Source of the DNA: Oculina patagonica
Taxonomy: Eukaryota
Direction of reading: 5' to 3'
Assembly: GCF_052425735.1 (NCBI RefSeq)
Contig: NC_135769.1
Location: 2,046,001-2,110,000 of the forward strand
Length of the DNA: 64,000 nucleotides
The position numbers were made by a program, and so were the translations under genes. Shown one piece after another: positions 1-45,496 of the stretch. Under the pieces are notes generated by a model. It was not told where the DNA came from and ran no database searches. It worked only from the letters and a program-made list of their open reading frames with translations. Positions within the stretch are counted from its first letter, which is position 1; every line of letters begins with the position of its first letter.

Positions 1-2942
1 GTGATACTGTATGTTGGGATGGGAAATGCCTTCCCTGCTGCGAATAAAGCCACCAGCCTCAAGATGTGCAGTGGCACACGGGCCAGTCCTGGTAAGGAAC
101 CACTTGACTCCAATAGGAACCATGTTATACCACTTGAGTGAGCGGTACAAACTTAGCGGCTGAGTACATTCCTGAAATGTGATCACAATGGGGTATATAT
201 TACATCATTTGAAGGTGTTAATTTCATCTCTTACCAAAGGAGGGATTGGTGCAGCATGTCCTACTTGAAATTTTTTTGTCCAAAAACACAACGCAAACCA
301 CCCTGGCTGGCTTGCCACTCCAAGGCAAACCAGAAATCCTAAAATTCAAAAATGCATCAGGGCTCGAAAAAAAGTATGACCTCAACCTTTTTCTTCTCCA
401 GGCAAGCAGCTATCAAATTGTGCTTTCCTGGGGCAGTTGCATGTTTATTTTATACAATTTTAATATTATTATTTTTTAACAACTTAGACAGCCCATTATA
501 CAATTGAAAATAAAAAGTTACCAGGGTACTTGCCTTGCAGGGAAATCTATAGGGTATACTTGTCCCAAATGACTGGTCGACACTTTTTTTGCACCCTGTA
601 CATGCCAATTAGGAACAAGAATGTAATTTATTTATGTACAGGCTTAGAAGCTTACAGAATGACTTAAAGGATATGTACAACGTACACATAAAGCACACTA
701 CAAACCTGGTGAAAATACATTTCTAAATGATCCTGAAAGTTCTGGCCCACACCAGGAAGATGAACATTCACAGGGATACCAAGCTTCTTCAAGTCATCAG
801 CATTTCCAATACCAGACAAATTTAATATCTGTGGCGTATTAATCGCTCCAGCAGATAAAATAACTCCCTTCCTAGCCATAGCTCGCTTCACTTGACTGCC
901 TACAAAGTATTCAACACCTACAGCACGGTTCTTCTCAAAGATCACTCTGGTGATCAACGTTCTTGTGTCTGCTTTAAGGTTTTTACGCTTCAGCGCAGGT
1001 CTAAGGTATGCATTTGCTGTATTCCATCGTACTCCCTTGTGAATTGTCATGTCTTTCCAACCAAATCCTTCTTGTTGATAGCCATTTATGTCTTCTGTGA
1101 AGGGATAGCCAGCTTGGACGCCTGCGTCAATAAATGCTTGGTATAGAGGATTGTTTGATTTCCCGCGTGATACATGGAGAGGACCATCGCCTCCTCTGTA
1201 ATCATCAGGACCTACAGGAATAAATCAATAAACCAACAATTTGAAAATAAAATTAATTGGCCATTAGATTATGCAGAAAGTTTCAATCTCCCATAAACAC
1301 TTTGATGAAGTTTCTCAGCTTCACTGAATCATCCTGTGTCAGTATCCAATGTGAATCAACAGCAACTAAACAGTTTAGACAGACATGAACAGAAAAAAAT
1401 CTTTATATTGGAAACCTGTGAATCTGATTAGTTCTCCCATTGTTTTATTCGCTGACATAACACAATCATTTGTTAGTTGCTCTTTTAAGGGGCAATTATT
1501 CTAGATTTTGGCTTACAAATACCAAAAATTGTAGGTTTTGGACTGCAATCCTTTAGAGTTTCTACTAAAACAATTAGACTACTCATCCTTGTTCTCTATG
1601 ACAATTCAACTCGGCTGCTCCTCGTTGTCTATTCACTCATAGAAAATTTGGGCTCATAGTTTTTTTAAGTTGATGCACCTCACAGTTTTTGTATGGCCAT
1701 CAGGGAAGATAACTAATTTATTACATTATATAATTCTTAAAAGCAAATTACACTTTACCTAATTCATGGGTCTGGGACTTCCTAAAGTATGGCAAACAGT
1801 CGGCATATGACCAGCCTTCAGCACCTTCCTTCTCCCAGTTATCATAATCATAAGCATGACCTCTGATATACACCATAGCATTCAGTGATGACGATCCACC
1901 CCACACTCTCCCTCTAGGTTGATAGATTCGCCTGAAAAGAAATTGAACGCAATTTAAAAGTTTTACAACTTGAGTACCGGTAATTCGTTATGATATAATA
2001 TAAAAATCATAGCTAAAAATAATTAAGAGGAAAAAGCAACAGGCACCACCAATGACATTTGATCAGATGGCCAGTTCTTCTCTGCAAATTTGCAAGCCAG
2101 GCTTTAACAGTGGCACTTTGCCTTTGATACTGGTAAGGAATTCTTAGGCTTTTCACAAAATGTTACCAAAAATCAACCCTCCAAGTTAAGACCATTTTAG
2201 TCACCATGGCGACTAAAATGACCAAACTTTTAGATCAGAGTGGAGACTAAATTGGAACTGAAGTTTCCAGACTGGCAACCAAAATTGAGAAGAAGGATTG
2301 AAAGCGTGAGCTTAATTTAGCAACTAAAATTTTTCACTGGTGACCAAACTTGAGGAGTCAGTGGCCAAATGGCCACTAACAAAGAAAATATACTTGGAGG
2401 GTTGAAAATATAGGCTCACTAAACACCAATCTGACATTTTAATAATGTAATAATTTTAATACTTAAAATACCTGTTGTCCATAAACTCTTGAGGCTCTGT
2501 CTCATAATACCAGTTGTATTTATTATCACAAAGATTATATATAAGCGCAGCCGGCATGTGAATCTTCCATGTCCAATCTTTAGGTCCTGCCTCAAGTAAA
2601 AGAACTTTGTCTTCAGGGTTTGCCGACAGACGGTTTGCCAGAACACAGCCCGCAGATCCTGCTCCACAAATAATGTAGTCGTGGATTGAAGAGAACTTTA
2701 TTGTGCCAGTACCAGAAAGAAAACATTTTTGTTGGAAAGTAGGGCGATGGACTAGAAGGCCAAAAAAAGAAAATTTATCAAAATACAGAAAAATAAGGTA
2801 AAAATTAAAATCAAACTGGTTAATAAAATTTGTGAAATAAAAAATTAATCCACAACATGTACATGTACCCACCTTTTATCATACGAAATGTGGATGCCAG
2901 ACTTTTATTAAAGCATTTTTTAAGAGTCAAGAAGGAGGCCAT
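1..2942 (-). CDS. CHDH: Choline dehydrogenase-like GMC oxidoreductase, copy A (3' part lies outside the window). Coding exons 2942-2873, 2751-2472, 1931-1759, 1211-706, 171-<1
   Basis: Presequence [23 protein letters not shown]; FAD motif [18 protein letters not shown]; [16 protein letters not shown]; [10 protein letters not shown]; NIQYH. GT-AG boundaries, phases and internal exon lengths (173, 506 nt) match the other copies. Confidence 0.9.
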
Positions 2943-3740
2943 GACCTTTGCCTAGCAAAATTCTGGAATTAAAAATAATGTAAAAAATAAAATGGAATTA
3001 TACAATTATTCAGTTTAAAAAAAAAAAAAAAAAAATTAAAAAAGTTTTTCGGGACCACAGAAGAAGAAAGTAAGGTGTTGGGGGGGGGGGAGGAGAAGAG
3101 AGGAAAAAAAAGAAGAGGGGAGGAAGAAAAAAAAAAAAAAGGGGGACGGGCCCCCCCCCCCCCCCCCCCAAAGATGGTGGGTTGAAACTTGAAAGAATGG
3201 CATGTTGAACAATAGAAAATTGCACAACAATTTTTTGTTATTACAAATTTATCTACATTCTCACACTGTTAATCCCATTTGAATTGAACATTAAACTTTT
3301 CGTATAAATATATACATTATTATCATTATTATTATTATTTGAATCTTATCCAGCAGTTCTGACAAGAGTGTGATAATTAAACTATTACCTTTATACTACC
3401 TTTATACTAATGCGCTTTTGCTCATTTACATGTTAAAAAGCGCAATATAAATTCATAAATTATGATTAATTATAAATTTGTTAAATGCAAGGATAAAAGG
3501 GGACCGCCCATCATTGAAGGGGTATTGAATGGTTTTTGCTAGCATGCAAGCACAGTGTTTTTCTTTGCAAGCACAAGCATTGACAGAAGATAGATCTATA
3601 TCAAGTTAGCCTTGCAAGCAATGAATACTTTTCAAAAAGCTATCTCCACTAAAACCAAGCATGCAAGCACTCGTGAAAATAAGCAAACAAGCACCCACTA
3701 AAATTCTGCGAGCATTCCGAGCAGAGGCCTAATTTCGACC

Positions 3741-4078
3741 CCCAGGGGGGTACTCCGGGACCTAAGTGACGGGGATGTGCGAAGGATTTTTTTGGGGTCG
3801 AAATTTTCGATTCCAGGATTTTTTGGGTAGGAGAATTTGGCAGGTATTTTTGGGGTTACTTGATTTAAATAGGGGATTTTTTTGGGTATTAAAATCAAAC
3901 TAAAGTGCCTTGGCGCGGCCTTGGCAATTAAGTGGTAATTTGACTAGGGATTTTTTTGGGCGTTTTTTGGTCCAGGGATTTTTTGGGTAATGTCGGGAGA
4001 CTTAGGGATTTTTTGGGTCCTGAGTTTTGCCTCCATTCGATCATCCCCGTCACTTTGATCCCGGAGTACCCCCCTGGG
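3741..4078. mobile_element. MITE with CCC(A/G)GGGGGGTACT termini, 8-bp TSD
   Basis: TIRs plus TSD TTTCGACC. Confidence 0.8.
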
Positions 4079-6985: not shown

Positions 6986-9900
6986 ATGACCTCATTGATG
7001 CGCAAAAGATTGCTCCTGAAAAGGCTGGGCATTGGCATTGCACTTCATGTTCTAGAGGGCAAGTATCTTAAGTTTGGTATCTTATCCAGCCCACTGTGCC
7101 TCTACCATTGATCTCAATTACGTGCTTCAATCATTTAGCTGACCTTTAATGATTTTTGTAATCTATTTTCACGCAGCCCACAGCCCAAAATTCCATCGAA
7201 GATGTTTGCAGTCCACCATGACGTTCTCTTCAACCCACGACTACATTATTTGTGGAGCAGGATCTGCAGGCTGTGTTCTGGCAAACCGTCTGTCGGCAAA
7301 CCCTGAAGACAAAGTTCTTTTACTTGAGGCAGGACCTAAGGATTGGACATGGAAGATCCACATGCCAGCTGCGCTTATGTATAATCTTTGGGACACGAAA
7401 TACAACTGGTATTACGAGACAGAGCCACAAGAGTTTATGGATAATAGGTATAGAATTAATCATGATCATTCTAACTAAGCAAGGTCTTCAAAGTTCGGAT
7501 CAAATGCAGCGAGGAAAAAGGCGAAGGTCGATATTCTCCCAGTATGGTCCTGAACAAGCCTTATTCGCCGTGTCAAAACATTCTAATTGGCTAATGTTAG
7601 TTATTGGACTTCTCAGCTGTGTTAGGGATGGACCTTACGGGTGGGGGGTTGAGGATGAGCAATTACCCCCCCCCCCCCAAAAAAAAAAAAGAAGAAAGAA
7701 ACAGGAAAAGTATAGGGAAAAAAATTCACGCACAGCAAGCCAAAGGTAAAGCTGCCCAAGCTAAGGGTGAAAAAAGTTGCGGAAACACAAGTCGGAAACA
7801 ATTCTAGCCCACCCCCCCACCCCCGCCCAAAAAACATAATAATAAAATGGTCCAACCCTTAGTTGCGTAATAACGTAACAGCAGAGGGAAACGAGAACTA
7901 GAAATTTCAGAACTTTATTTGCTTGATTCTAGCAGTAGGTTATCAAAAATAATATTTCGAGCAGACAAAGCACTCAGTTTGCCTGGTAATTGTCTTGTAC
8001 CTTACATGTAAGGTACAAGAAGAAACTAGCTTGTCGAAGAAACTAGCTTGTCTTAGCTATATTAAATTCGAGGGTAAATAAAGTTTTATGTTATGTTATG
8101 TTATGAAATTAACTATCGGAAGATCTTCTATCGAGTAATATGAGGTCATATATAGACAATCAGTTGTCCGAGGAAATGACAATTTTTTTCCTTTTTTTGT
8201 TTTTTGCTTTTTGCTTTTTTTTGTTGTTGTTATTGTTGTTGTTTTTTTTGCTTTTCTGATAGAGTCATTTAAACTCTTAAACTTTGGTCATCACAAGTTA
8301 TTTTTTCTAGACGCATCTACCAACCTAGAGGGAGAGTATGGGGTGGATCGTCATCTCTGAATTCCATGGTGTACGTCAGAGGTCATGCTTATGATTATGA
8401 TCGCTGGGTAAAGGAAGGTGCTGAAGGCTGGTCATATGCTGACTGTTTGCCATACTTTAAAAAGTCCCAGACCCATGAATTAGGTACGATTTTGGTTTTC
8501 CATGGTTAGACAATTCTTCATGATATTTAAATCGTTTTAAAAAAGATATTTAACATTTGATTTTAGTTCCAAAACGTAATAACAAATTAAGTTATCCCAG
8601 GCCTGGAATAAACCAGGTGGGCTGTAGGATTCTGTCAGGAAGAGTTTTGTGTCAAGAGAGAATTTAGCTGCCCCGCCTTCTACCAATAATGCCCACAAAA
8701 CCCCTAGATGGACATCTGACAAAAAACGGTCGGCTTTCCGACATAGAGGACCACCATCTACGATAAGAAATCGCTGCGTCGCGGTCGTAATGCACACACC
8801 ACCTGACAGGAAATAGAACATCGTTACAGTGGTTGTTTCTTAGGCGACAGATCCTGAGAACACATCGAACCAAATAACATCTCACATCATATGAAGACAA
8901 CAACCAAATTAGACATTTTGTTTGATGCTCCTGTCAAATTCAGAAAAACGAAGTCACAGTAGATCGATACGTTACATTTATGTAGAATCTGATCTAAACT
9001 TTGAGGTCTCTGAGACTGTGACACCAACTTCAGCTAAAGACTTCATCAGCCTGGTGTGCCAGACCTTTTGGATCTTTCAAGAGGACCCTTTAGACACGAG
9101 AAAGGCCCGAGTGACACCTGAAGTTACACCTTGACCAGAGGTGTGGGTCTTTGACTGGGCGTGTAAGAACCCAGCAGTAAACTTACTTCGTAAGGTTAGC
9201 AAGGGGGAGAGGTTTTGCTACTGAAGTAAAGATCTTTAATAGGAATTTGAAAGTCAATGAAGAACAAAAAAATCACCACAAACAAAAAGGATGAATACGG
9301 GCGGCTACAAGAAGAGCATCGGCACGAAAATATAGTTAATGTAAGACTACTGAGTTGCTTGCTATCGAAATAAGTCGAGAACAAGACTCAGATTTCTACC
9401 TGAAATAGCGAGATAGATTATAATACAGCAAGATGCTAAATAAGTCTAAGTAGGTTAATTTTTTTAAATTTCCGTAGGTCCAGATGATTACAGAGGAGGC
9501 GATGGCCCTGTCCATGTATCACGTGGAAAATCAAACAATCCTCTATACCAAGCATTTATTGACGCAGGCATCCAAGCTGGCTATCCCTTCACAGAAGACA
9601 TGAATGGCTATCAACAAGAAGGATTTGGTTGGATGGACATGACAGTCTACAAAGGTGTACGGTGGAGTGCAGCAAATGCGTATCTCAGACCTGCGCTTAA
9701 GCGTAAAAACCTTCGAGCTAAAACAAGAGCAATGATCACAAAGATTGTGTTTGAAAACAACAAAGCTGAAGGTATCGAGTACGACTTAGACAGTCAAGTG
9801 AAGCGGGCCCGGGCTAGGAAAGGAGTTATTTTAGCCGGTGGAGCAATTAACACACCACAGATACTGAACTTGTCTGGTATTGGAAACGCTGACGATTTGC

Positions 9901-10100
9901 GGAAGCTTGGTATTCCTGTGAAAGTCCATCTTCCTGGTGTAGGATACAACCTGCAAGATCATTTGGACGTGTCTATACATCAGGTTTGTACCTATGCACG
10001 AAAAGTTGGCTTTCAACCGCCGACCGGTTAGCTTAGTTAGCTTTAGTTGGTAGAGCGCCGGACTACCGTGTGGGAGGTCTCGGGTTTGATTCCCAGACCA

Positions 10101-10136
<36 letters not shown>

Positions 10137-13100
10137 TATGTTGCCTTTGCAATGACATCTGCAATAATACCGCTTTGACGTTTATCAAAGGTGTGACCAA
10201 GGTACAGTAAAAGATGACCGTGACTCGTGTCAAGGGAACCTTTGATACGCTTTAAATCTGTTATAACTTTGAAGAACGTCAAATCCCTGTCAAAGGCGAC
10301 ATTAAAAGACTTGATAACTTTTGACATCTGTATCAAAGATAATCATCATTCTTTGCTTCACTTTTGATTCGACAAAGCCGACTTCTTGTGCCGAAGCTAC
10401 CAAGATCCGACCAGGTTTTGAAGCAGAATTGAAGACTCTGAAGCCTGCATAAGATGAATAGATGGGAACAGTTGACAGACCAAGCCCCTGCATGATTCCC
10501 CACCCGTTACTTAGGTCCTACATCCCGCTACATCCCATAAGCAAAATGTTTCCTAGTGTGCAAGCTCTTTTTGGCCATCAGAAGTTGAATATGGCAAGTA
10601 ACAATAACCACCATTTTGGTGGGATGTTGTTTTTATCTTTGCGCTTGTCCAAACAACTAGTTAATTCTCTCTTCTGTTCCTTAATCCAGATAGAAATAAA
10701 TTCTAAAAATGTTTTAGTGGGAGGAAACCCAGAAAAAAAACCTTGTAGCAACGCTGAGAACCAGCATCAAATTAAATCTGACTCACGTATGGAATCTGAT
10801 TCAAATCTGATTCACGTATGGAATGTGATTCAAATCTGATTCACGTATACCGAAATACAGTTAGTGGTTATAAGCGTGCCGTAAACGACTTTGTAAACCC
10901 GGCCCTACGTCCTGGTGATAATCCATGTGATAACAACTACGTTAACCTGTGATAACTTTCTCACGGTAACTCCCAAGTGATATCCCTTTGAAGTAAATCC
11001 TCCATTGTGATCACTTTTCAGGAATGTACACAGCCCTTAACTTTGTACCGCTCACTCAAGTGGTGGAACATGGTTCCTATTGGAGCCAAGTGGTTCTTAA
11101 CCCGGACTGGTCCGTGTGCCACTGGACATATTGAGGCTGGTGGCTTTATTCGCAGCAAGGAAGGCATCTCCCATTCTAACATCCAATACCACTTTCTACC
11201 CTTAGCTTACAAAGATCACGGTAGAGTGATTTTACAGAAAGAAGCCTTTCAAGTAAGAACATGATGTGTTTTATGATTTATCCTTACATTGCCTCAGTCT
11301 TTAATCTCAATGGCTGAATGGGAGGGAAAGGAAGCACCTAGTGAGAGCAAATATTATACCTCATTGGTGCTTACTTTCGCGGGTACTTAATTTCGCGACT
11401 TTGGCGAGACAGTATTTTGCGGGGTTTTATTTCAACGATTTGGCCAAAAAGGACGTTAAAAGCATTAAAAATAAATCAAAAACTTATGTTTCGCGGTTTT
11501 TGAGAATCGCGAAAATCGCGAAATTAAAGGCCCGTGAAATGAAGTAGAGGTGCTAAAGGAATCTAACTTGCTGTTTTTATACTTTAATTTAGTTTACAGT
11601 ACACAAAGCGTATTCTAAAACGTTAATTAGCGTCCCAATAAAATGAATCTTATTGAATTATGGCTGCTCTTGTCGTATCCCCTTTTTTTAGAATAAAATA
11701 ATTTTAGCAAGCGGGGTAACGCATTCATTCGGCTCAATTTTCCAATTCTTTTCTACGTTTTAAGGTATTTTTCTGTTCCTTGCGGACCACAAGTAAAGAG
11801 CATCGAAACCATATCATTTTACAGCCTTTTTCAGTTTCTGTTTTGTTTTCAAGGTTCACATTGGCTCCCTTCGAGCTCAGAGTCGTGGATATGTGAGGCT
11901 GAAGTCTTTGGATCCATATGACCATCCCATCATCAACCCCAACTACCTGTCCACTGAAGAAGATAGAGTGGAGTTAAGAGATGCTGTTCGACTAACCAGG
12001 GAAATCATCAAGCAGAAGGCTTTTGATCCTTTTCGCGGGAAGGAACTACAACCAGGTAAATGCACATCAATAGTTGATATACTTTCTTTGCAGCGTATCA
12101 TTTTTTGACACTTGTCACACAACACATCTCGTTTGAAGTACAGTCATCTCTCTCTAAGACGGACACCGTCGGGACCGGCCCCAACTGTCCGTCTTAGAGA
12201 GGTGTCCGTCTTATAGAGAGTCGAGGTAATGTGACACCAGAAATTCTGAGATAATAAAGATAAATGGCTATGCACAATCTTATGAATACACGTCTGTTTA
12301 AAGTCTGTTTAAAGTCGCTTACGTTAGCAAAACCTTCAAACTGGGACAAAAATATTAGAAAGAAAATTTACTCGTTTGCTCATTACAATGGATAATTTAC
12401 TGCTTCTGAGAAGTAAGCAGTACATACATGTTGCATACTAAACATGTCCATATGTATTCGCTTGTTAATGCGAACGTTCACGATTTATACTAGTTTAAAA
12501 ACTTAACTGTACACTTTTCAAAATACTAAAGAGACCGTATTCGTGCGTTGAAGCAAAAGTTGAGACCTTTTACAAGCTGTAAGTCAGTGGAAAACTTCCT
12601 CTTGTTACCCATACACTTAAGTAGAGAGGTAATGCGTTATAGCAGATTTTTTTGATAGGTTTGGTATCTTAAAGGCGCTGACTAACTTTGCTTTATGTCG
12701 ATACGAAGTTTTGAAGTATTATTCACTAAAAAAAAAACACTTAATGTGCGTGTCCGTTGGTAGCCGTCGTCTCTCTCCCCGAACGCAGCAAGCGGATCGG
12801 AGCGTGAGAGGCGGCTGTTTTCGCAGGCTAGTCCGTTGGCGGTTTCAAAGTGTCCGTTGTCCGTCTCAGAGAGGTTTCCGTCTTATAGGGAGTTTTGTCG
12901 GTTGCAGTAAAATGACTGAAAAACGGCAGGGACCATCATCAGGTGTCCGTTTTATGGAGGTGTCCGTTAAGAGAGAGTTGACTGTACTTTGTTTTGTATG
13001 TGTTTGTGGTGAGCCAGAAGAGTATCTTTGACGCAGGTTAAACCAGGTTAAGGTTAAACGACGCCAAGTCTTTACATGGGCCACTTATGCTTTCATTATT

Positions 13101-13538
13101 TTTGGAAACATTTTGCTCTTTCCTTCAATCCTTTTTGGTTCTAACATCAAGTTGTTCCTCATAGAAGACCACTTTTTACGTTTACTCAGTAATCGCACTT
13201 GACGCGTCTTTGTTTTTCAAGGTGACCATGTTCAAACAGATGAGCAAATTGATGCCTGGGTGCGACAAAATGCCGACACTGTTTATCACCCATCATGCAC
13301 GTGCAAGATGGGTGCCGAAGATGACCCGATGGCTGTCGTCAATAACAAAACGGAGGTCTTCGGAGTGGAAAATCTGAGGATTGTTGACGCGTCAATAATG
13401 CCGAGCATTGTGAGCGGAAATCTTAATGGACCAACCATTATGATCGCAGAGAAAGCAGCTGATGTTATATTAGAAAATCCACCCCTGCCTAAATCAACTG
13501 CACCAGTGTACAGGACGCCAGAAAAGGGACAGAGATAG
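6986..13538 (+). CDS. CHDH: Choline dehydrogenase-like GMC oxidoreductase, copy B (~590 aa). Exons 6986-7058, 7177-7447, 8311-8483, 9478-9983, 11022-11252, 11854-12055, 13222-13538
   Basis: Spliced ORF of 1773 nt: [14 protein letters not shown] presequence, [32 protein letters not shown] (catalytic His), [14 protein letters not shown] (catalytic Asn). The first coding intron is GC-AG. Confidence 0.9.
10016..10165 (+). mobile_element. tRNA-derived SINE fragment
   Basis: A-box-like TAGTTGGTAGAGCG and B-box-like GGTTTGATTCC, followed by a non-tRNA body. Confidence 0.65.
10773..10848. repeat. Short tandem repeat with a ~29-bp unit AAATCTGATTCACGTATGGAATCTGATTC
   Basis: About 2.6 copies visible. 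Confidence 0.7.
12141..12984. mobile_element. Tc1/mariner-type non-autonomous element
   Basis: TA|CAGTCATCTCTCTC...GAGAGAGTTGACTG|TA; internal ACGGACACC/GGTGTCCGT repeats. Confidence 0.8.
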
Positions 13539-19300: not shown

Positions 19301-19841
19301 CATCACCACCTCTGTAATCGTCTGGACCTACAAAAATACGGTATAAACATAATCAATTCAATCGCGATTAGCCAGCATCGTACAGACCGCTCCACCGGCT
19401 TTTACAAAAACTGTTCACTATTTTAAACTCTAATACAGAGTACACTTTTGCCCTTATTTGTATTCACATATAATCCATTGTCTTCTTTCCACGACATGCG
19501 CGATACCTGATTCCAAAGTTACACAACTCATTTGGGCCCAAACCTGAGAAGCAAACTGCTCAAGCAAGCAAACTCACGTTGAAACTACGTTTCAAGTAAT
19601 ATATCAAACACGAGAGACAGTGTTTCTTCGGGATATCCAAACACCGAGAAGAGAGTTGAAAATATGACGCGCAGTGGAGTATTTTTGAAAAAATTCGAGG
19701 TGTTTTGATAGCCAATGAAACACTGTCTCGAGTGTTTGATATATCTTCTCAATCGAAGTAAAAACCACAGAGTAAACGGGGAAATAAATCGTAAAAATCT
19801 ATGCTAATTAAGACCGGGTATCCAAACCTCCTTCACGGTTA

Positions 19842-19878
<37 letters not shown>

Positions 19879-23401: not shown

Positions 23402-24879
23402 GTAAGCCGAGATCAATATTATTATTGTTCCATCAATGTTTAAATGAGCGTTTCCGTGACTTGAGAAAAAATCTCCTCGCCTTACTTGCACAGATGTCCA
23501 AGTGTTTTAATTGAGCGTTTCTCTCTATAGTATATTTCGACCTTTCTAAAGCGCTAGCTTTAGCCTCTCCCTCGTTGCTTCAGTAAATAATTTGCCACTT
23601 AAATCATCTAGTTAGAGTAATGAAAAAAAAATACCACAGATCATACGGTTGTATGTACCTGTTGAAATGATTTGCTTGCTTCGGAGGGTGAATGAACTGA
23701 AGCTTTGAATATAAGCCTAATGCTTAGGCTACATTTCTGCAAAACTTTGATAGAGTTATGCAAGGTAAAAGAGACAGGAATCAAGGTGCAACTATAAACA
23801 TGAAAACGCCTAGTTCGCTTTTTCCAACCTAACCCAAAATACTTAACACTTGAGGTTTTATCAAGCAGAAGGTTAGCCCCCCTGCCTTGCTCCCCCCCCC
23901 CAACCAATTAACTGAAGTTGAACCAAGGATTATTCCCTATCAGCTCTGTGGGTTTTTTTTTACTCCCAGTACTTGTTTGACACTACTGAAATTCTTGCAT
24001 TAGCCATTCACATATCACAATTCTGATCTATTGTTTGATTTTTTTAATAAATCATACCAGTACATTGCATTTTGTTATATAAGTTGGCCATATTGCTGCC
24101 ACAAGGGCCATTCCATTTTATATTCACACCCCCCTGTTGACAAGGTTATTCGCCATTCCCAACAACCAAAGAAATTCCAATTTGTACCCAAAAGTCTATT
24201 GCACCCCCATGGGGACTCCCATACAAAAAGGACTAGGTATAGGATGCTTGTCATCTCATTTAGGAGTGTAAATTATGGATTTTGGTCTAACTTAGGGTTT
24301 TTACAGAACAGAACGCCATAATTTTTTTATCTGTCAAGGTTTTGTTATGGGTTGGAAAATGAAATAATAAAAATAGAATAATGATGATGATTTTGATATA
24401 AATCACTGCCATACTGTATTGGTGGTCTGTTGTGTTTTAGGGGTGAAAAAAGTTTCAGCCAAATACCTTTAGAAGGGGCCTGAAGGGGTAAAATGGGAAC
24501 TGGGATTTGGACAAATTGTCACTGGGAAAATTGGATCTAGGTCACTGGGACTGGGAATCAAAAAATAGAGCTGGGAATGGGATTAGGAAATTTGGGAAAA
24601 AATAGGCTGGGAAATGGGATTTTATACCCCCTCCCTCCATTTTCGGGGGGTTTTAGGGGTTTAGTTCAGGTTTTCTGATGAGCATCCCATATGGGAGCCT
24701 CTTCCCTGGGGTTGCACAACCCCATTACCACCACCCTCCCCCTCCCTGGGGTTGCACAACCCCATCACTACCACCCCCTCCCCCTCCACCCATACCAGTT
24801 CTTACCCAGCAAGGTAGAGTGAGGGTAAGGTTCTGTCATGTAGACGAATGGCTAAAATTATGTTACTCCTTTTATAGGC

Positions 24880-30800: not shown

Positions 30801-32678
30801 CATGGTCATGGCGGGAACACAGTGGTTTTTATTTAAGAGCGGGACGTGTGCCACAAACCATTTCGAGAGCGGTGGATTCGTCAAAAGTGAACCTGATGTA
30901 TCACACCCGGATATAGAGATGCAATTTGTTCCTGTTGTTATGAGGGAAGCGGGGACATCTCAGATTATCCAACATGGATATCAGGTAAATAATTCACATA
31001 TACAGTCTTTTAAAGGTCTGGCAAAACGAGAAAACATGTTTCCAAGAACACCCGTAGCGCGCGCATGTTTCCCCAATGTTTCCAGGTTTTGCCACACGAG
31101 AAGCATTGTTTGCAGCGTCAACTTTGTCTCCAAGAAGCAAAATATGCTTCTACTACACGGCAGAAACATAATTCTGTGTTTCTGCGTGACATGGAACCAT
31201 GGCAAAACGAGGAAACAATTTTGAAAACAGATTTCTGAAGACATGTCGGCCTCGTTTTACCAGGCCTATAAGTGAGCAAAATGGGAACTGTGTGGTGGCC
31301 TCATGATTGGTACATTACGGATTCGAGACTGGCCAACGTGAGGAAGAGAAACGATAAATTGGCGTTGTCCTTTATATATATAAAGTTAAACATAGATTAT
31401 GTCCTAATAGCATCTGTAACATTTTTAACGAGCATAATTCCACGTATAACCTGAGACAATCAGATTTTTCTACTCCTAGATACAACACTGTTACTTATGG
31501 AAAGCACTCTTTGCGTTGTGTTGGACCCAAACTATATGGGGCAAACTTTCTACGGCTGACAGATCAGCCAAGACACTGCAGGCTTTTACAAACCGTATTC
31601 ACAAAAGGGATATAACTCGCTTAATGGACAACGGCTGTAAGGGATGCATCCTATGCTGCACATANNNNNNNNNNNNNNNNNNNNNNNNNNNNNNNNNNNN
31701 NNNNNNNNNNNNNNNNNNNNNNNNNNNNNNNNNNNNNNNNNNNNNNNNNNNNNNNNNNNNNNNNNNNNNNNNNNNNNNNNNNNNNNNNNNNNNNNNNNNN
31801 NNNNNNNNNNNNNATTTTTCTATATCATAGATTATAATAACATTTTTATATGACTTATATATATTTTTATTGTATTTATATTTAGTATTAGTGTAGCTTT
31901 TAGTTTTTAGCAGTGTCCCCTAATTAGTATGGTATTATTTTCCAGGCTATAAGGTTTTGACACTTAAATAAAGTTTCTTATCTTATCTTATCTTTATCTT
32001 TCCGCCAAACAACCGTTTCTGTAACACTTTTTGTTTATTTTGTTTCAGCTCTGTATTGAATTCCTAAGACCCAGGAGCCGAGGCTTTGTCAAGCTGCGGT
32101 CACGTGATCCACTCACTCATCCTGTCATTCAACCAAACTATTTGACACGTGACAGCGATCGCCGGCTCATGAGGACCTGCGTACGAATCGCCCGTCATGT
32201 GCTCAACCAGAAGGCCTTTGAACCTTACAGAGGAAAAGAATTAAAACCAGGTTTGTTAAAGATCTGTCTTATGTGGAAAATGAATCTCTTGAAAGAGCTC
32301 TAATCTGCGCGAAATCTTCCTGTCTTTGAGAGCGCCTGGTTTCCATTGTTGTAACGCATTTCCTCACCACTCTTCGTAGGTACATCATGTAAAACAGAAG
32401 AAGAAATAGATGCTTTCGTACGAGGATTCGCCAAGACCGATTACCATCCCTGTGGCACGTGCAAAATGGGAGCCGACGATGATCCGACGGCTGTTGTCGA
32501 CAAGAATACGCGAGTCTTCGGAGTCGACAATCTTCGGGTCGTGGATGCGTCTGTTATGCCCAGTATAGTCAGCGGTAATCTGAACGCGGCCACGATCATG
32601 ATTGCGGAAAAGGCAGCGGACTGCATTTTAGGGAAACCGCCATTGCCCAAGGAACATGTACCAGTCTATGGCAAATAG
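24880..32678 (+). CDS. Divergent choline dehydrogenase-like GMC oxidoreductase, copy D (~584 aa). Exons 24880-24958, 25671-25935, 27630-27802, 28429-28934, 30754-30984, 32049-32250, 32380-32678
   Basis: Spliced ORF of 1755 nt; [19 protein letters not shown] presequence; [11 protein letters not shown]; GGSSSINAM; QDHVQ; [12 protein letters not shown]; SGNLNAAT; same intron positions as A-C. Confidence 0.88.
26100..26385 (-). mobile_element. tRNA-derived SINE, near full length
   Basis: tRNA-like head with GGTTAGTGC and GTTCGAG boxes on the - strand; same body as 57283-57555. Confidence 0.8.
26481..26895. mobile_element. CCnGGGGGG-TACT MITE nested in an older TAGCC-ended element (~26439-27091)
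   Basis: 8-bp TSD AAAAGAGA; inverted copy of 33861-34285. Confidence 0.8.
28109..28395. repeat. Interspersed TIR repeat (TAGAGC...GCTCTA); related copies at ~16820-16951 and ~20722-21008
   Basis: Shared AAACCAATCAC...GTAATGCAAAACCAAAGC...AAAACCGCTCTA. Confidence 0.7.
28942..29428. mobile_element. tRNA-containing retro-like insert with tandem plus inverted (hairpin) structure at the exon 4 donor of gene D
   Basis: tRNA-like segment 28994-29069 (-); direct repeat 28941-29041/29204-29304; inverted arms 29158-29282/29306-29429; 15-bp duplication TACAATATGTAAGTA. Confidence 0.8.
29458..29694. mobile_element. hAT-like MITE (TAGGGG...CCCCTA); related copy at ~3518-3740
   Basis: TIRs; ACGTTT on both flanks; GCGAGCA internal repeats; absent from E. 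Confidence 0.7.
31390..31995 (+). mobile_element. LINE (CR1/L2-group) 3' fragment spanning the assembly gap
   Basis: [30 protein letters not shown]-like peptide; AATAAA followed by a (TCTTA)n tail. Confidence 0.65.
31665..31813. other. Assembly gap (149 N) in intron 5 of gene D
   Basis: Run of N. Confidence 1.
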
Positions 32679-37197: not shown

Positions 37198-40100
37198 ATG
37201 AGGATGTACAGCTATTCCTTGAGGTTTGCTTGCAGAGCACAAATATCTAGAAAAACACTTGCATGGAAAACCAGGGGTTAGTTAAACCAGTTTTCTTTCT
37301 TTGTTTGCTCTTGGCTTGCTTTAACCCTAGTGCTTGGTGTTTTTCTAGTCGGAGGTAGGCCTTTCTCGATTATGCTAGCATTTTTTTTCGGCATTTTTTG
37401 GGAAAACGAGCATTTTTTTTTTTTCGTTTTTTCTTGAAAAAGAATTGCTAGCATTTTCTGTCATTTTCATGACTGTGATCCAGATTTCAGCACTCAGAAC
37501 TCAGAAGGATAAATAATCCTAAAGTTTCACAATTTTGATTACTTAATTTGATTGTTTTCTGTCTGTTTCGACTGTTTGTGCGTTGTGTTACTTGTGTTAC
37601 TTGTGTTGTGTTACTTGTGTGTGTTTGTTTAATTTTTTTAAAAATATTTTTTTAATTTTTTTTTTAAATAATTTTTTTTAAATAATTTTTTTTATTATTT
37701 TTTTATAAACAAACAATTATTAAGTATCACCTGTTGTTGATATGAGCATATAATGTAAGAGTTTGTACGTTTTGTTTGAAATAAAACAAAGCATTCTTTG
37801 GAATTCAAGTGGCATTTTTTAAAGAAATCAGGCATTATTTTAGCATTTTTTTGGCTTTATGCGAGAATTTCTAGTAGCATTAAATGCCAGTTTTACTAGC
37901 ATAATCGAGAAAGGCCTAGTCGGAGGGTTAAAGAAAACCCCCCTTTACAAGCAAACTTTCACAGGTAAAGGGTCTGGAAACCAGTAGAAAGTTGTCCCGC
38001 CGACCGGGTATGCAAGTTGTCCCTGGTAGAACATTTACAAGGCAGCTAGGGTAATTACCCTGGCACTAGGGCACCCGAGAGCTATTGTAACGCCCTAGGG
38101 TAAACGTAGTACCCTAGTGCTAAGGTAACTCTAGCACTAACGCCATTTAACCCCTTCTGCTAGCAAACATGGCCTAAAGTTCAATAACTTTACATTTTCA
38201 TCTACTAGCAAGCCAAGTCCAACCAAGCAGTTTCAAGTCAACTTCGTCATTTTCTTCCACCCATGATTACATCATCATTGGAGGCGGATCTGCTGGATGT
38301 GTTCTGGCCAATCGGCTCTCAGAAAATCCAGATACAAGGGTACTTCTACTTGAAGCTGGACCAAAATACAACACATGGAAAATCCACATGCCAGCGGCAA
38401 TGCCATATAACCTGGATGGTGACAGCCGTAACTGGTACTATACATCAGAACCTCAAGAAAGTTTGCAAAATAGGTATTAGCAGTTTGTTCTCTTGGTCTG
38501 TATTTCATGAGAAATTAAAAAAAAAATAAAACTGGTGAAACTGCACTTAATTCTGCCAATGCTTTAGGGGCATGCAACAACCTTTTCACCTACAGTTTTT
38601 CCCCTACTTGCCGGATAATAAAGTAGAGTAAATGAGCATCGAAGCAATGCGCAAGTCGCAAGACCGAGTGTGTGGAATTCCCAGACAAGTGTCTTTTGCG
38701 TGGCTAAAATCCAATCATTTTCTATCTTGCATGTTGCAGGACCATGTACCAGCCGAGAGGTCGAGTATTGGGCGGATCCTCGTCGATAAATGGAATGATT
38801 TACGCGCGAGGACATGCATTTGATTTCGACAGATGGGACAGAGATGGTGCCACAGGGTGGTCTTACGCAGATTGTCTGCCTTACTTCAAGAAGTCAGAAA
38901 CCTTTGAGTCTGGTACGTCTTTTTACTGGAATCCCAGGGACTTTAATGCTAGAGACGTAGCCTTCAAATCTGATCATGCCCAGATGCTGTGTTCGTAAGA
39001 TTTCCCCCCCCCCCCCATAATTTTGCCCTCATTGGGAGAAATTATTAGTGATTTCGAACTTCCCTTCTTTTTTCCTGCCCCGTGGTGAAATCATCAGCGT
39101 TTAGCCCCCTCTCCACTATTGCACCCATCCCACGCCTACTATTCGCTCCCCTCCTTCTCTGGAAACCTCAACAAAACACCATTACAAAGTACAAGAATTA
39201 ACTGATGACTTTAGCTGTCCTTCGAATTCTACTGAATCTAGTTACCTTTCTCTGTCCAGGAGCTAACCAATACCGAGGAGGAAGTGGCCCGCTGCGCGTG
39301 TCACGTGGTACATGCTCCCACCCTCTGCACCAGACCTTTCTCGACGCTGGTGTTGAAGCCGGCTTTCCATTCACAGAAGACTTCAACGGTTATCAACAGG
39401 AAGGGATTGGGCGGTTGGATCGTACTATACATGACGGAAAACGATGGAGTGCTGCAACGGCTTATCTAAAACCCGCTCTACAGCGAAAAAATTTAGTTAC
39501 GGAAACCAGGGCGCTGGCAAACAGAATTTTGTTTGAAAACGACAAAGCTACCGGTGTAGAATATCGCGTTGGGAACTCAGCCAAATGCGCGCGCGCTTCT
39601 AGGGAAGTTATTGTTTGTGGAGGAGTGTTCAATTCACCGCAGCTTCTTATGCTGTCTGGACTTGGAGATGAGGAGGAGTTGAAAGCGTTGGGAATACCCG
39701 TGGTGGCTAATTTACCAGGAGTAGGAAAAAATCTACAAGATCATGTGCAAGTGCATGTTCAATATGTAAGTACATTTGATTAAGAACGTTCGCGCTACTT
39801 GTTTGTGCGTATCCTTACTCATTCTCGTCCCCATGGCCCTTTCGTTTTTCTTAGCCGGCTGGGCCTTGGCAGAAAACGAAAGGCTCTGGGGACACAGGAT
39901 CTCCAGTCTTAGATTCAAGGACTTCCGGTCTTCATATATGCAGTCATGGTGTTTCAAAAAAAAATGTATAAGAGAATCGTTATGCTTTCGACTCCCGTTT
40001 AGGTATTCTTTGTTCCAAACAGCCAATCAAAAAAAATTCGAATTAATTCAAAAATCATATGTCCCCAGAGCCCTTCGTTTTTTCGTGCCAAGCCGGCTAA

Positions 40101-43100
40101 GAGAAACAAAAGGGCTATGGGAACGAGAAAGATCCTAACTGCGCACCAACCTCGTTCTCAGGGCCTCTCTCTCCTTTTCCTCCTCCTATCGTCGAGGAGA
40201 GAGGAGGAGGAGAAAAAAGCGAGAGGCCCTGTGAACGAGGTTGACTGCCAACGGGTTGCTACGTAATGATTCGGGCGCGCACAATGGAAGAAACTGGACA
40301 ATTATTGTACTGGGTTCAGTTGTTTAAAGGGTTGACAGCGCTATCCACTGCACCTGATAAATCACTATCCAGAGGAAAGTATGGTATGTTTTGCAAACAC
40401 TTATATCCACTCGACGGCGGTTTTTTCTAGCGGATAGCGATATCCACGTTTTGAAAAATCGGGCCCTGTTTAGGGTGGTGGCTGCTTCAATATCTTGGCT
40501 TGGATTTAACGATCATGATTTCCGATGACCCCCGTTTTTTTAATAGATAACCATGTTTTTATTATTATTTCATAGATGGTAAACAATCTGAAATCTCCCA
40601 CTTCTCTATACTGGTACGATAATTAAAATTTCGCGCTCCAAACCATTTTCATTTGGCTGAGCCGGTTTAAGTTTATTTAAAGGGACTGTGTCACGGCTGA
40701 GTTAAGTTTATTTTATTATTTTTGTCAAATACTCGCTATGAAACTTAATGTTTGCAAAGAAATTACTTCTATGGATCGAAATGACGAAACCATAGCTTCA
40801 TTGCAACCACATGTGTCTCCCGGGCGTTATAATTTAAAGCTAGAAGCAAACAAGATTAACTTTGAACACTGTTCAGCCCAACAACATTTCAAAAACCCAT
40901 GTCGCAATGCGTTTCAATCTTCGTCGCTTTTGGCCATCCGTACTTTCTTTTGTATTTGGAGTGTTATTGAAATGTTCTTTCACCGTTTTAAGAGGTTATT
41001 TTTATATTTTTAACGAACTTAATGGCTTGCCTAAATTTAGCTAAAATCCGTGACACAGTCTCTTTAAGGAGCTATGTCACGCAATTTTAGGCAATTTCGG
41101 CACTGACGAACTAGTCATAGAATGAACTGAAATATCGCAATAACGGCTTAAAACTGTAGACGAACTCATAAGAAACACAGAAAGGCCAAAAAGTGGCATG
41201 GATGGGCAAAATTCGAGAAGATTAGCACGGATTGCGTTCGGGTAAACTTGAAAAACGTCGGCCCGACCTTTTTTTTTAAAAAAAAAGTTTAATGCAATTT
41301 ATATGAAAATGTCATTTACAATGCTCGAAAATCATCCTTGTTTGTTATTTGGCCGTAATTTTGCTAATAAAAGACTTTTTGCTCTGCCAATTTGAAGTTT
41401 AGAGCTCTCAATTAACGAAAATAAATAGAATTACCTAAAAAACCGTGGCATAGCCCCTTTAATCAGCCTTGTTACTACAGGAATGTACCCAGCCGGTAAC
41501 ATTGAGCAGCGCCTTTAAACTGCACAACATGGTCATGGCGGGAACACAGTGGTTTTTATTCAAGAGCGGGACGTGTGCCACAAACCATTTCGAGAGCGGT
41601 GGTTTCGTCAAAAGTGAACCTGATGTATCACACCCGGATATAGAGATGCAATTCGTTCCGCTTGTTTTGGGAGAATCGTGGACATCTCAAATCCATTCTC
41701 GTTCCCAGAGCCTTCCGTTTCTTTTGGTCACGTGGTCGGCGAAACGAAGGGCTCTGGTAACACTGACTACCGGATGTCGTAAAATCCACGACATCCGGTA
41801 GCGCATGCCCACTGCATAAATGTTCGTCTGCGCCTGCTCAGTAAAAGAAAGGGGAAGGCTGGGGCTGACTTAGACGAGAAGAAAGCGAATTTGAAAGAAG
41901 ATACGACATTTGAGTTTGGCGTTCGAAAGAGCTGTACAGCAATCCTTGCTACAATTGTCGGAGGACATCAAGAAACAAGGAATGGAACAGGAAGACGGCA
42001 GATAGAAAAGTTAGAATCCAGAGGAATTGGAGTCATAGTGTTTAAACACGGAGTCGAGGAAATCATCAGCTGATATAAACATTCCGACGGTTGATGACTG
42101 TCTGTGAAATTTATTTATGGCCATGCGGAGGTATTGTAGAAAATTCAGAGCTAAAAAAGCGGCTGAGCGATGAGGTATCATTCTATTGAGCGGCGGTAAG
42201 AAATATCACATTGAATTTCAAAGTCTTCATGTATTCATGAACTCCATTTAGTGTGTATATCTTGTATAAGCTAAGTTAACGTTGATAGTGCAAATGTTTG
42301 CAATATTTTTAATGCAATAAAAAGTACAACCGAGTTACACCTTACAAAAGATGTACTTTTCATTTGTTCATAAACAAAGGTCTGCTTCGTGAATATGTTA
42401 TTCCAATAAACTCCCAACAAACTCCCAGACTGTTATTCGGTCTTTTTTCCGGAAACATTTTCAAACTGACCGGAAGTATAACGAAAATTGCGTAGAAGCG
42501 TTTCATTTTTTTACCTAATTACGCATGCAGTTTTTATCAGCCAATCAAAAAAATCATATTTTTTACCGTTACCAGGGCCACTACGTCATGTCATTTAAAA
42601 AAATACGCGTGGCCCTGGGGAAGAGGATGTCTCAAATCCAACATGGATATCAGGTAAATGGTTCACTTACTTATAGTTTAAATAGTTGGTTGTTCTATTT
42701 ACTGCTCGAGGGCCTCTCGCGCGGGGGTCGCGCAAGGAGAGTTAAACAAAAAAAGAAAATTTTGCATCCATCAATTTCAGTCATCGAAAATTGTACTGGA
42801 CATATATTAGTTTTAGTCTGAGCGCGCTAACTATTTTAGACTTGTTCGGATTTCGGCCACACTGAGTGAGCAAAATGTGGCCGTGTTCACACTTAGTGCC
42901 CGAGCACTGGTACCTGGGCACCGATAAAAAATAGCGTCGTGTTCACACACAGAAAACCAAAATACCCAAGTACCATTAAGTGACCGAGTGACCTTGTACT
43001 CGGGCACGGGCACTGTTCCCGAATTATGACGTGGGCACTTGAAAAAATAGTATGTTCACATTAGTGCCCAGCGAGAATCGTACCCAGGAACCGTACCCAG

Positions 43101-45496
43101 GCACCAAGTGTGCATACAGTCGAAGCTCTCTTAACGGACACTCTCGTAAGCAGACAGCTCTACTTACGGCCACCTTGTTTGAAACCTCGTTTTAACTCCC
43201 ATACGAATTCTGTATTTTTACATTCTCGTAAGCGGACATTCCCGCAAGCGGCCGCGGACTCTTTCAGAGATTACGACTTTTTCTTTGTTTTTAAGCTCCC
43301 GTAAGCGGACAGTCCAATGAAAATTGCATCTGCATCTTGTGTTTATCAATAAACTTCAAATCGCCGTTCGTCACAATGATTTTAAAGTGATTACAGTACC
43401 ATATCTCAGTGCTTGTTTTGTCGTCATCCACGTCCGTCCGGTTATTGTTAGCTGGGCAAGCTCCCTTGAACGGCCATTAAACCCCTACACCTCTAGTGGC
43501 CGCTTACGAGAACCAATCTCGTAAGCGGCCAGCTCCAGTTACGGACACTTTTTTCGCGTCCCGAGGGTGTCCGCTTACGAGAGCTTCAACTGTACAAACT
43601 CAAGCCTTATGGTGTTATGATTCAGGTACATTACGGGTTTGAGCCTGGTCATCCTACGTCATTGTGACACAGTGCCTCTCTTTACTCAGGTGTTTTAACG
43701 GGTAACGGCAAACTGTTGGGATAACATGACAAAAATTAGATGGGAGGGGTGGGGAGTAATATGCAATGAGCTGACATGCGACCCGGGGGGATACCAGTAC
43801 TTCTAGTCGCTTAATGCTATGGAAAGCAATATTACCCGGTAGTTTGGTGAGCCACAAGTAGGCATAAATAGATTGTGCTCAGCAACTTTTGAGCAACTTT
43901 TTGTAGCACCAGCAAGCTAGGGCAACTTTTGCCTTCCTTGGCAACTTTTGAGCAACAAATTGATATAAAACCGATCCAAACCATAAAAGTCGTTTCATTT
44001 CGAGGGATTTTTATCTTTTTTATCTATTTTTTATTTATTTTTTATTTTTTATCTATAATTGAAATTATGTTGAGTTTAAAGAGTATATTGATTAAAACAA
44101 AGTATTTATATTTCTCATATAACAATGGCTTTTTGGACTCTTTCAATGATTGTAGAATATTTAATGAAAATTTTTAAATGGCAACAAACAGACAAACACA
44201 TTTATCTAAAACAAAACGACTCTAGAGCAAGCAATTTTTCTAAATTTTGGTGGCAACTTTTTGATATTTGAGCAACTTTAAGGTATATTGTGAAGCAACT
44301 TTTCCTGAATTTACTAGCACAATCTATTCATGCCTAGCCACAAGAATTAGGAAAGAAAACGATTACTTGCCACTGTCTTTTCCACTCCGTAACAAGTTTT
44401 ATTTATTGTTTATTTTGTTTCAGCTCTGTATTGAAATTCTAAGGCCCAGCAGCCGAGGCTTCGTCAAGTTGCGGTCACGTGATCCACTCACTCATCCTGT
44501 CATTCAACCAAACTATTTGACACGTGACAGCGATCGCCGGCTCATGAGGACCTGTGTACGAATCGCGCGTCACGTGCTCAACCAGAAGGCCTTTGAACCT
44601 TACAGAGGAAAAGAATTAAAACCAGGTTTGTGAAAGATCTGTTATATGTGGTTTTGTTGGGATGTACTGACCCGAGCAAAATGAATCTCATGTTTTCACC
44701 GATAGCTCTAAAATAGCGGTAACCAGCGCGATATTTTCTTCTCTTAAAGAGTAGACTGTTCGGCTAAACTGCAGGAAACCCCGCAACTTATTTGCATCCT
44801 ATTGTTTTCTGCCTCTTTCTTGAAAGAGTTCCCGGACTCGGTGAATCTCATTTGCGGGGTATTCTGCAGTTGCTCTGGCTGTTCACAACCTCTCTATTTT
44901 TCAACGCGAGAGAAACAGCATTTGAAGAGTGCGCGAAGCACGCGGGGGCGGGGGGTGGGGGGCGGTGGTCAAGCCGAGCGAGCGAAAGAGTTATTTCTGG
45001 GTCGCCCACTACATCTCGATCGGAACGAGACATTTTATTGGCTCTTAAAACAATAGCGGCACCCACCTCCTCTCGCCTCCCGCTTGCGCTGACTTCCAGC
45101 TCTCTCGCGATTCTTAGGTAGAGGATTGTGAACAGTCTAATTTAAGGGCGCTGGGCTTTCATCGCTGTAACACATTTCCTCGCCACTCTTCTAGGTACAT
45201 CATGTAAAACAGAAGAAGAAATAGATGCTTTCGTACGAGGATTCGCCAAGACCGATTACCATCCTTGTGGCACATGCAAAATGGGAGCCGACGATGATCC
45301 GACGGCTGTTGTCGACAAGAATACGCGAGTCTTCGGAGTCGACAATCTTCGGGTCGTGGATGCGTCTGTTATGCCCAGTATAGTCAGCGGTAATCTGAAC
45401 GCGGCCACGATCATGATTGCGGAAAAGGCAGCGGACTGCATTTTAGGGAAACCGCCATTGCCCAAGGAACATGTACCAGTCTATGGCAGATCGTGA
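37198..45496 (+). CDS. Divergent choline dehydrogenase-like GMC oxidoreductase, copy E (duplicate of D). Exons 37198-37276, 38209-38473, 38740-38912, 39260-39765, 41481-42653 (interrupted by a TE at 41694-42629), 44424-44625, 45195-45496. May be a disrupted allele
   Basis: All exons are in frame and D-like, except for the transposon insertion 15 nt before the exon 5 donor. Confidence 0.75.
37356..37918. mobile_element. hAT-type MITE
   Basis: TIR TAGGCCTTTCTCGATTATGCTAG; 8-bp TSD GTCGGAGG. Confidence 0.85.
39820..40131. mobile_element. MITE with related termini (CATTCTCGT...ACGAGAAAG), 9-bp TSD
   Basis: TSD ATCCTTACT/ATCCTAACT; absent from the matching intron of D. Confidence 0.8.
40147..40243. 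mobile_element. 97-bp MITE (CAACCTCGTTC...GAACGAGGTTG)
   Basis: Terminal inverted repeat; degenerate 9-bp TSD; absent from D. Confidence 0.7.
40681..41458. mobile_element. Two adjacent Kolobok-type MITEs (~40681-41063 and ~41068-41458) sharing a TTAA
   Basis: TTAA|AGGGACTGTGTCACGG...CCGTGACACAGTCTCT|TTAA|GGAGCTATGTCACG...GTGGCATAGCCCCT|TTAA. Confidence 0.7.
41694..42629. mobile_element. 936-bp non-autonomous TIR transposon inside exon 5 of gene E, 9-bp TSD TCTCAAATC
   Basis: Imperfect TIRs CATTCTCGTTCCCAGAGCC / GGCCCTGGGGAAGAGGATG; TSD at 41685-41693 and 42630-42638; empty site in gene D. Confidence 0.9.
43117..43592. mobile_element. Tc1/mariner-type MITE nested in an older element (~42879-43606)
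   Basis: TA|CAGTCGAAGCTCTC...GAGAGCTTCAACTG|TA. Confidence 0.8.
43859..44336. mobile_element. hAT-type MITE
   Basis: TAGGCAT(A/G)AATAGATTGTGCT TIR; 8-bp TSD GCCACAAG. Confidence 0.85.
44752..45139. mobile_element. MITE (TAGACTGTT...AACAGTCTA) in intron 6 of E
   Basis: Terminal inverted repeat; absent from the short intron 6 of D. Confidence 0.7.

Follow-up and report, generated by a model that had tools for sequence, protein, structure and literature searches.

Why does a stony coral carry five choline dehydrogenase (CHDH) genes side by side, and do all of the copies act on choline? This question is raised by a 64,000-nucleotide stretch of the Oculina patagonica genome (CM126646.1:2046001-2110000, assembly GCA_052425735.1; hereafter the window), which holds five genes of the GMC/choline-dehydrogenase type, A to E, in the order A<- B-> C<- D-> E->. 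An earlier note on the same stretch had described a gene cluster with stepwise remodelling of the substrate pocket and more to it than extra dosage. We consider it probable that the locus is a five-gene inverted and tandem array of nuclear, intron-bearing CHDH-family enzymes dependent on flavin adenine dinucleotide (FAD), that its three pocket classes are kept apart by selection, and that D and E are not redundant with A.

Glycine betaine synthesis begins with CHDH. Glycine betaine and related osmolytes are abundant in corals, and knowledge of the enzymes that synthesise them is still sketchy (PMC7240134). In that paper, Ngugi et al. 2020 surveyed betA/codA-like genes across cnidarians and found them expressed in Aiptasia; neither this array nor its pocket classes were described there, and our literature searches brought up no publication about the array in Oculina. 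Three natural pocket classes stand side by side here on one enzyme scaffold, one of them lacking both residues that define choline binding and conserved across coral families.

Catalytic core and pocket residues

The five loci were located by a six-frame motif search, followed by all-against-all comparison of open frames and inspection of splice sites; searches for B and E used deposited proteins or exon pieces rather than spliced proteins of our own. In exon translations of B and D, Pfam identified GMC_oxred_N (PF00732; E ~1e-33) and GMC_oxred_C (PF05199; E = 1e-11 to 1e-27), and both domains were present in the deposited proteins of all five genes. The GxGxxG FAD motif was intact throughout, as GAGSAG in A-C and GGGSAG in D and E, with Rossmann-type Pfam matches on exon 1. 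Catalytic His466 and Asn510 (choline-oxidase numbering; Y-H and G-N-x-N) were likewise kept in all five genes. The earlier note had reported intact FAD motifs, and an intact His/Asn pair in B-E; both statements hold, and the pair of gene A, which lies outside the window, is also intact according to the full protein P0378. The closest solved structure was BetA 9lq0, matched over its full length (E = 3e-174 for C and 9e-166 for D), and the alignment placed E, H, and A of 9lq0 at the three sites where gene D has Q, Q, and D.

In Arthrobacter choline oxidase, glycine betaine is contacted by W61, S101, I103, W331, H351, V464, Y465, H466, and N510, while E312 stabilises the positive charge of choline and H351 helps both substrate binding and transition-state stabilisation (PMC10980864). 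H99 bears the covalent FAD, and the entrance is gated by M62, L/K65, V355, F357, and M359 (PMC10980864). We anchored our numbering on actinobacterial loci that were retrieved by searching for the H99 motif with a degenerate DNA pattern. Among these, 546-amino-acid Arthrobacter-group orthologues (L011, L016, L040, and L111) carried all 16 published positions at their exact numbers. The choline-oxidase orthologues were aligned with 51 CHDH/BetA proteins, which mapped LN[A/S/G]M to 99-102, the last residue of QDHLx to 312, the last residue of NIQYH/DIEMQ to 351, and T[V/A/D]YH to 463-466. The variable residues that the earlier note had assigned to the pocket do align with choline oxidase S101, E312, H351, and V464, beside H466, and every motif that it quoted was present in the gene named:

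721-735 (gene A) and 18837-18851 (gene C), reverse strand: QDHLE
9954-9968 (gene B), forward strand: QDHLD
28905-28919 (gene D) and 39736-39750 (gene E): QDHVQ
NIQYH in A, B, and C; DIEMQ in D and E
TVYH in B; TAYH in C; TDYH in D and E
LNAM, LNSM, LNGM, INAM, and INGM in A, B, C, D, and E, respectively

Across the alignment, the residues at 312/351/464 took the following forms, with H466 and N510 retained in every group:

E (or D)/H/A: vertebrate, echinoderm, hemichordate, and bacterial enzymes
E/H/A: gene A (via P0378) and gene C
D/H/V: gene B and Desmophyllum OS493_029970, which also have W65, I331, Y359, and S101 in common
S/Q/V: Stylophora P0321 and one Tara coral gene
Q/Q/D: genes D and E, Orbicella XP_020619304, jgi198, and lgn271
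Q/D/N: Actinia

Gene A is the slow-evolving canonical choline dehydrogenase, with Glu312, His351, Ala464, His466, and Asn510 as in vertebrate CHDH and bacterial BetA. Gene C keeps the same canonical pocket and evolves faster; it has G at 101 and Leu after the catalytic His. Gene B reads as a variant, with Asp312, Val464, Ser101 (S at 101), and Trp/Ile/Tyr changes in the substrate domain, and its substrate segment appears orthologous to Desmophyllum and Stylophora paralogues. The 312 equivalent is Glu in A and C, a conservative Asp in B, and Gln in D, E, Orbicella, jgi198, and lgn271. At 351, His is found in A, B, C, and every reference CHDH/BetA of the set, and Gln in D, E, and their orthologues. 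Systematic pocket differences, as the earlier note had put it, are thus borne out in that three classes are conserved across coral species; its LN[A/S/G]M differences fall within the normal BetA/CHDH range. Its word "stepwise" goes further than the data, which describe three classes and show no order of events.

Divergence at otherwise constrained sites followed the same division. In 43 reference proteins, 164 columns reach a conservation of 95% or more; there A deviated once, B twice, C four times, D nine times, and E ten times. Seven of the D/E deviations at such columns recurred in Orbicella and jgi198 (five of them exactly), and only partly in lgn271. Recurrent changes included H351Q, Q-to-E at 349 (where Orbicella has Ala, not Glu), and H-to-C and G-to-E in the QVHxG motif (376 and 378).

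A mechanism can be proposed from these substitutions. In all five enzymes, an alcohol (or aldehyde hydrate) would be oxidised as its hydride passes to FAD, and D and E keep the machinery for it, namely the FAD fold, His466, and Asn510. In D and E, the change of Glu312 to Gln removes the carboxylate for the trimethylammonium group of choline, and the substrate-positioning His351 is replaced by Gln. Acidic residues are gained elsewhere, as Asp at 464 and Glu at the 349- and 378-equivalent positions. Such a pocket would bind a different substrate, or an onium head group in another orientation via the relocated carboxylates, and because of this altered binding D and E would not be redundant with A. 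D and E probably act on a substrate other than choline. The public annotation gives them and their orthologues in other corals the name "choline dehydrogenase, mitochondrial-like", which is probably misleading for D and E; the records of A, B, and C bear names that say little, or none.

Ancestry, selection, and probable gene conversion

Trees were built at two levels of care: the full 51-row tree was a quick maximum-likelihood run with Shimodaira-Hasegawa-like approximate likelihood ratio (SH-aLRT) supports only, and two partition trees were careful runs. Genes A-E were nested within animal CHDH (SH-aLRT 99-100) and within a clade of cnidarian sequences (96-98). D and E joined Orbicella, jgi198, and lgn271 in a 100% clade with a stem of 0.52 substitutions per site, to which Actinia was sister (97-98). 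The cnidarian lineage of D and E is an older one with a long stem, and it has members in Orbicella and on a Tara coral scaffold as well.

Ratios of nonsynonymous to synonymous substitution rates (dN/dS, or omega) were calculated for pairs of copies and are averages since each duplication:

D-E: 0.18-0.21
B-C: 0.18-0.19
A-B: 0.18-0.25
A-C: 0.16-0.21

All copies are under purifying selection (dN/dS ~0.2). Neutral decay of D and E is ruled out by omega of ~0.2 together with a signature conserved across species. Rates differed among the copies: with Acropora and Montipora as outgroup, A had 10 lineage-specific changes vs 42-44 in B or C (p < 1e-5).

Gene B has a mosaic history. In the full tree B paired with C, and two adjacent Desmophyllum genes paired together. 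Individual sites divided along the gene. Twenty sites grouped the copies by species, and the stretch from B residue 272 to 448 contained none of these; eight grouped B with Desmophyllum 029970, six of these between residues 289 and 373; the third pairing had two sites only. A tree of B residues 272-448, a partition chosen after the site pattern had been seen, joined B, Desmophyllum 029970, and Stylophora with support of 99/98. The flank tree instead recovered B with C (95/98) and made the two Desmophyllum genes a pair (97/95). At the nucleotide level, B and C were 97% identical in exon 1 vs 78% in exon 4. D and E were 89.5% identical in exon 3, rising to 99% in exon 6. As the substrate domain of B groups by type and its flanks by species, the pattern points to gene conversion with C that homogenised the FAD-binding flanks of B and spared its pocket. 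The array thereby probably offers a case of selection protecting a substrate domain from gene conversion.

Linked copies also occur in other corals. Two canonical-clade (A-C-type) genes of Desmophyllum have adjacent locus tags. A Tara Pacific coral-metagenome scaffold (L124 1767-12667) carries a B-like gene directly upstream of the D/E-type gene lgn271, head-to-tail on the same strand. This B-like gene (Ser312/Gln351/Val464) is closest to the Stylophora paralogue, and lgn271 has the same seven exons with exon 4 uninterrupted. Adjacency of B-like and D/E-type genes is conserved on Tara Pacific coral scaffolds. Acropora is the classic coral genus for production of dimethylsulfoniopropionate (DMSP). 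The D/E type was not seen among the named proteins searched from Acropora, Montipora, Porites, and Pocillopora, which is weak negative evidence.

Outside corals, "CHDH" proteins of 800-900 amino acids in many bivalves, hemichordates, amphioxus, and crinoids join an N-terminal HAD-type hydrolase (PF13419/PF00702/PF13242) to the GMC enzyme (examples are P0005, P0151-P0158, P0178, P0182, P0196, P0252, and P0330). Such a fusion could provide a joined phosphatase-plus-dehydrogenase route to betaine. Corals were without it.

Gene models, the insertion in gene E, and surroundings

In GT-AG gene models all five genes have open reading frames; each consists of seven coding exons, and the positions and phases of the junctions agree. 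Six shared exons with GT-AG borders and identical intron phases (2, 1, 0, 0, 1) emerged from open-frame comparison and splice-site inspection. Deposited proteins revealed an additional upstream coding exon, exon 0, in every gene; the intron behind it is of phase 1 and identically placed in each. The identical intron positions reported by the earlier note therefore stand, with two amendments: it had left out exon 0, and exon 4 of gene E bears a 945-bp insertion. The features of the array are as follows:

1-2942, reverse strand: gene A (exon 0 2942-2873, exon 1 2751-2472, exon 2 1931-1759, exon 3 1211-706, exon 4 171-1)
6986-13538, forward strand: gene B (exon 0 6986-7058 with a GC donor, exon 1 7177-7447, then 8311-8483, 9478-9983, 11022-11252, 11854-12055, 13222-13538)
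16309-22174, reverse strand: gene C (exon 0 22174-22093, exon 1 21295-21025, then 20090-19918, 19327-18822, 18556-18323, 17221-17020, 16631-16309)
18572-18650, reverse strand: degenerate 79-nt tandem copy of the 3' end of gene C exon 3, in the short intron 3, 15 nt upstream of exon 4
24880-32678, forward strand: gene D (exon 0 24880-24958, exon 1 25674-25935, then 27630-27802, 28429-28934, 30754-30984, 32049-32250, 32380-32678)
31665-31813, no strand: assembly gap (N) inside gene D intron 4 (30985-32048)
37198-45496, forward strand: gene E (exon 0 37198-37276, exon 1 38209-38473, then 38740-38912, 39260-39765, exon 4 from 41481 (interrupted), 44424-44625, 45195-45496)
41696-42640, forward strand: transposon-like insertion in gene E exon 4, 945 bp start-to-start

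Exon 4 of gene A is truncated by the window edge, with another 2.7 kb of the gene outside; the part within the window was 100% identical to deposited P0377/P0378. The gene C model was 100% identical to ACROYT_G036548 (P0165 = KAL9955253.1/XP_078345900.1), a protein from which the 79-nt exon 3 copy is absent. Gene D has an alternative first exon near 23758, and its model was 100% identical to XP_078345902 (P0269; isoforms XP_078345901-904). The N gap costs gene D no coding sequence, as the exon 4/5 junction GYQ/LCIEF is exactly that of E and of the RefSeq protein and the frame runs on unbroken. Gene E corresponds to XP_078345926 (P0270) except at one junction.

N-terminal extensions of ~40 amino acids carry 7-8 Lys+Arg and 0-1 acidic residues, a composition compatible with mitochondrial presequences and thus with a predicted mitochondrial location. 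The public model of gene B begins at the internal ATG 7218 (552 aa) and has no such extension; the donor of B exon 0 is GC (GAGG/GCAAGT), not GT. The shorter model may reflect a difference in compartment or a mere annotation gap.

In gene E, the alignment with D runs to ...TCTCA(G/A)AT and then breaks, and the remaining exon 4 resumes 945 bp downstream. A 16-nt direct repeat, GGAyrTCTCAAATCCA, borders the insertion at 41680-41695 and 42625-42640 (14/16 identical); the two flanking copies are GGACATCTCAAATCCA and GGATGTCTCAAATCCA. The ends of the insertion are imperfect inverted repeats, and a subterminal inverted repeat (GGCTCTGGTAAC / GTTACCAGGGCC) supplies both donor and acceptor. The donor CTG/GTAAC and the acceptor GTTACCAG, both within this subterminal repeat, are reverse complements of each other. 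Reading straight through the insertion meets a stop codon, and two annotations remove it differently. The RefSeq model splices out 41678-42625, in frame, with a net loss of 1 aa. The GenBank model splices out 41757-42575 via the repeat sites (CTG/GTAACA ... TTTTTTACCGTTACCAG/G), also in frame, with 42 extra aa. A search for further copies within the window gave only a weak match of the first 62 bases at 40065-40129 (77% identity). The insertion may represent a nascent intron, or else recent damage that disables the gene.

No sixth GMC copy was found within 10 kb beyond gene A, where there is a reverse-transcriptase gene instead (770 aa, just past gene A and outside the window; L122 20833-25927). 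Open reading frames scanned downstream of gene E matched only RVT_1 and DUF6451, and the window contains no betaine-aldehyde dehydrogenase or other pathway gene. A multi-enzyme metabolic cluster is ruled out by this content; with no other pathway genes nearby, the locus is a paralogue array, and the term "gene cluster" of the earlier note fails in its metabolic sense. The retroelement remnants lie on the reverse strand at 50006-50832 (RVT_1 50536-50832, DUF6451 50006-50416). Further downstream, the long, nearly perfect arms of an inverted repeat occupy 55293-56150 and 58330-59200 (93-100% identical stretches, translated), with ~2 kb between them. A short repeated element is common to the A-B intergenic region (3456-3855) and gene D intron 3 (29401-29692), where the translated matches are weak, with 17-32 residues at 53-88% identity.

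Competing explanations and known systems

Several observations weigh against three pocket classes maintained by selection with D and E non-redundant with A. Pocket positions were mapped by sequence alignment to choline oxidase rather than by three-dimensional superposition, and the partition used for gene B was the post hoc one described above. Position 101 (A/G/S) varies among genuine BetA/CHDH enzymes and carries little weight. Variation at 312 and 464 is also seen in CHDH-like proteins of molluscs, whose function is unknown; changes at these sites are thus not bound to abolish the use of choline. Gene E may be impaired by the insertion in exon 4, for which the RefSeq splice sites look weak by eye, and E has the private changes D40Y and G368W at conserved sites; its unique changes (19-23 vs 11-12 in D) do not differ significantly in number. 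An approximately unbiased (AU) test did not reject a stony-coral-only origin of the D/E clade (p = 0.345), so its split may or may not predate sea anemones. Within 10 kb of the Orbicella D/E-type gene there was no GMC neighbour, and the protein collection held no Logan transcript identical to any Oculina copy.

All five proteins could still be choline (and betaine-aldehyde) dehydrogenases, kept for dosage or for expression divided by tissue, stage, stress, or compartment, with pocket changes that tune kinetics. We regard this as unlikely, though worth serious attention. It accommodates the FAD motif, His466, and Asn510 in all copies, the fully canonical pockets of A and C, the conservative Asp312 of B, the high betaine levels of corals (PMC7240134), the compartment difference hinted at by the public B model without a presequence, and the several CHDH copies of other marine invertebrates. 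It does not account for the absence in D and E of Glu312 and His351, which are (nearly) invariant in vertebrate, other invertebrate, and bacterial enzymes, for the clade-specific D/E changes at near-invariant sites, or for the preservation of the B substrate domain against gene conversion. On the pocket classes, purifying selection, and type identity of B, the earlier claim of more than extra dosage has reasonable support as regards B; for D and E it is strongly suggested. The osmolyte chemistry and mitochondrial location put forward in the earlier note, like any particular substrate, stand as hypotheses. Loss of substrate-handling residues could also mean that D and E have lost efficient catalysis and persist in a non-enzymatic role, for example as a mitochondrial outer-membrane adaptor like that of sea cucumber CHDH-SQSTM1 mitophagy. 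Two such residues are lost, and PMC10559093 describes a non-catalytic CHDH role in an echinoderm; yet the catalytic His/Asn, FAD-contact motifs, and whole GMC core are conserved at omega ~0.2, and new acidic residues conserved across species suggest a working pocket, which makes this explanation quite improbable.

We give slightly less credence still to the idea that some copies, E in particular, are young pseudogenes whose diversity is partly decay. The 945-bp insertion on whose removal two annotations disagree, the private changes D40Y and G368W, and, in C, the second copy of an exon fragment together with four conserved sites that have changed would fit decay. All frames are open, however, both splice solutions for E are in frame, D-E omega is ~0.2, the rate difference between E and D is not significant, and the D/E pocket signature is common to other species and so is not decay. 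Acquisition of D and E from an alphaproteobacterium has next to no chance of being correct. D and E are 61-62% identical to a Denitrobaculum-like BetA, slightly above their identity to A-C, but A-C are likewise ~60% identical to bacterial BetA. A bacterial origin is ruled out by a seven-exon structure with intron phases as in A-C and by nesting in animal/cnidarian CHDH (SH-aLRT 96-100). Selectively maintained pocket classes, with D and E non-redundant with A, remain the explanation we favour. A narrower proposal is speculative and, in our estimate, rather doubtful: the D/E clade might be an oxidase/dehydrogenase dedicated to an onium or hydroxy compound, other than choline, in the osmolyte/antioxidant metabolism of corals, and B a second specialised enzyme. 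For D/E the candidate substrates would be sulfonium alcohols or hydroxy-acids of a DMSP-type pathway and precursors of some other betaine. On this proposal, robust corals would possess a small set of enzymes derived from CHDH, each with its own substrate and protected by selection.

Among known systems, the array is nearest to BetA (9lq0) and vertebrate mitochondrial CHDH (EC 1.1.99.1), with the same GMC fold, FAD motif, and His/Asn pair, and with the same Glu312/His351/Ala464 in A and C. It differs from them in having five linked copies instead of one, in Asp312/Val464 of B, and in Gln312/Gln351/Asp464 and further clade-specific changes of D and E. Arthrobacter globiformis choline oxidase (2jbv/4mjw) is homologous over its whole length and much more distant, with E = 1e-83 to D vs 9e-166 for BetA. 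It binds FAD covalently via His99, where all coral genes have Leu or Ile, and its Val464 is the residue found in gene B.

The insertion in gene E resembles introners, transposon-born introns with splice sites in their terminal repeats, in its target-site duplication, inverted ends, and splice sites within its own repeat. It differs in being a single copy in the window, known from the sequence and two annotations only. For the array as a whole, the closest precedent for linked, diversified GMC genes is the insect GMC cluster (Iida et al. 2007, PMC1891103). There too, tandem GMC paralogues have been retained across species with substrate diversification. That cluster is larger and consists of insect-specific subfamilies rather than CHDH/BetA enzymes, so the likeness is without orthology.

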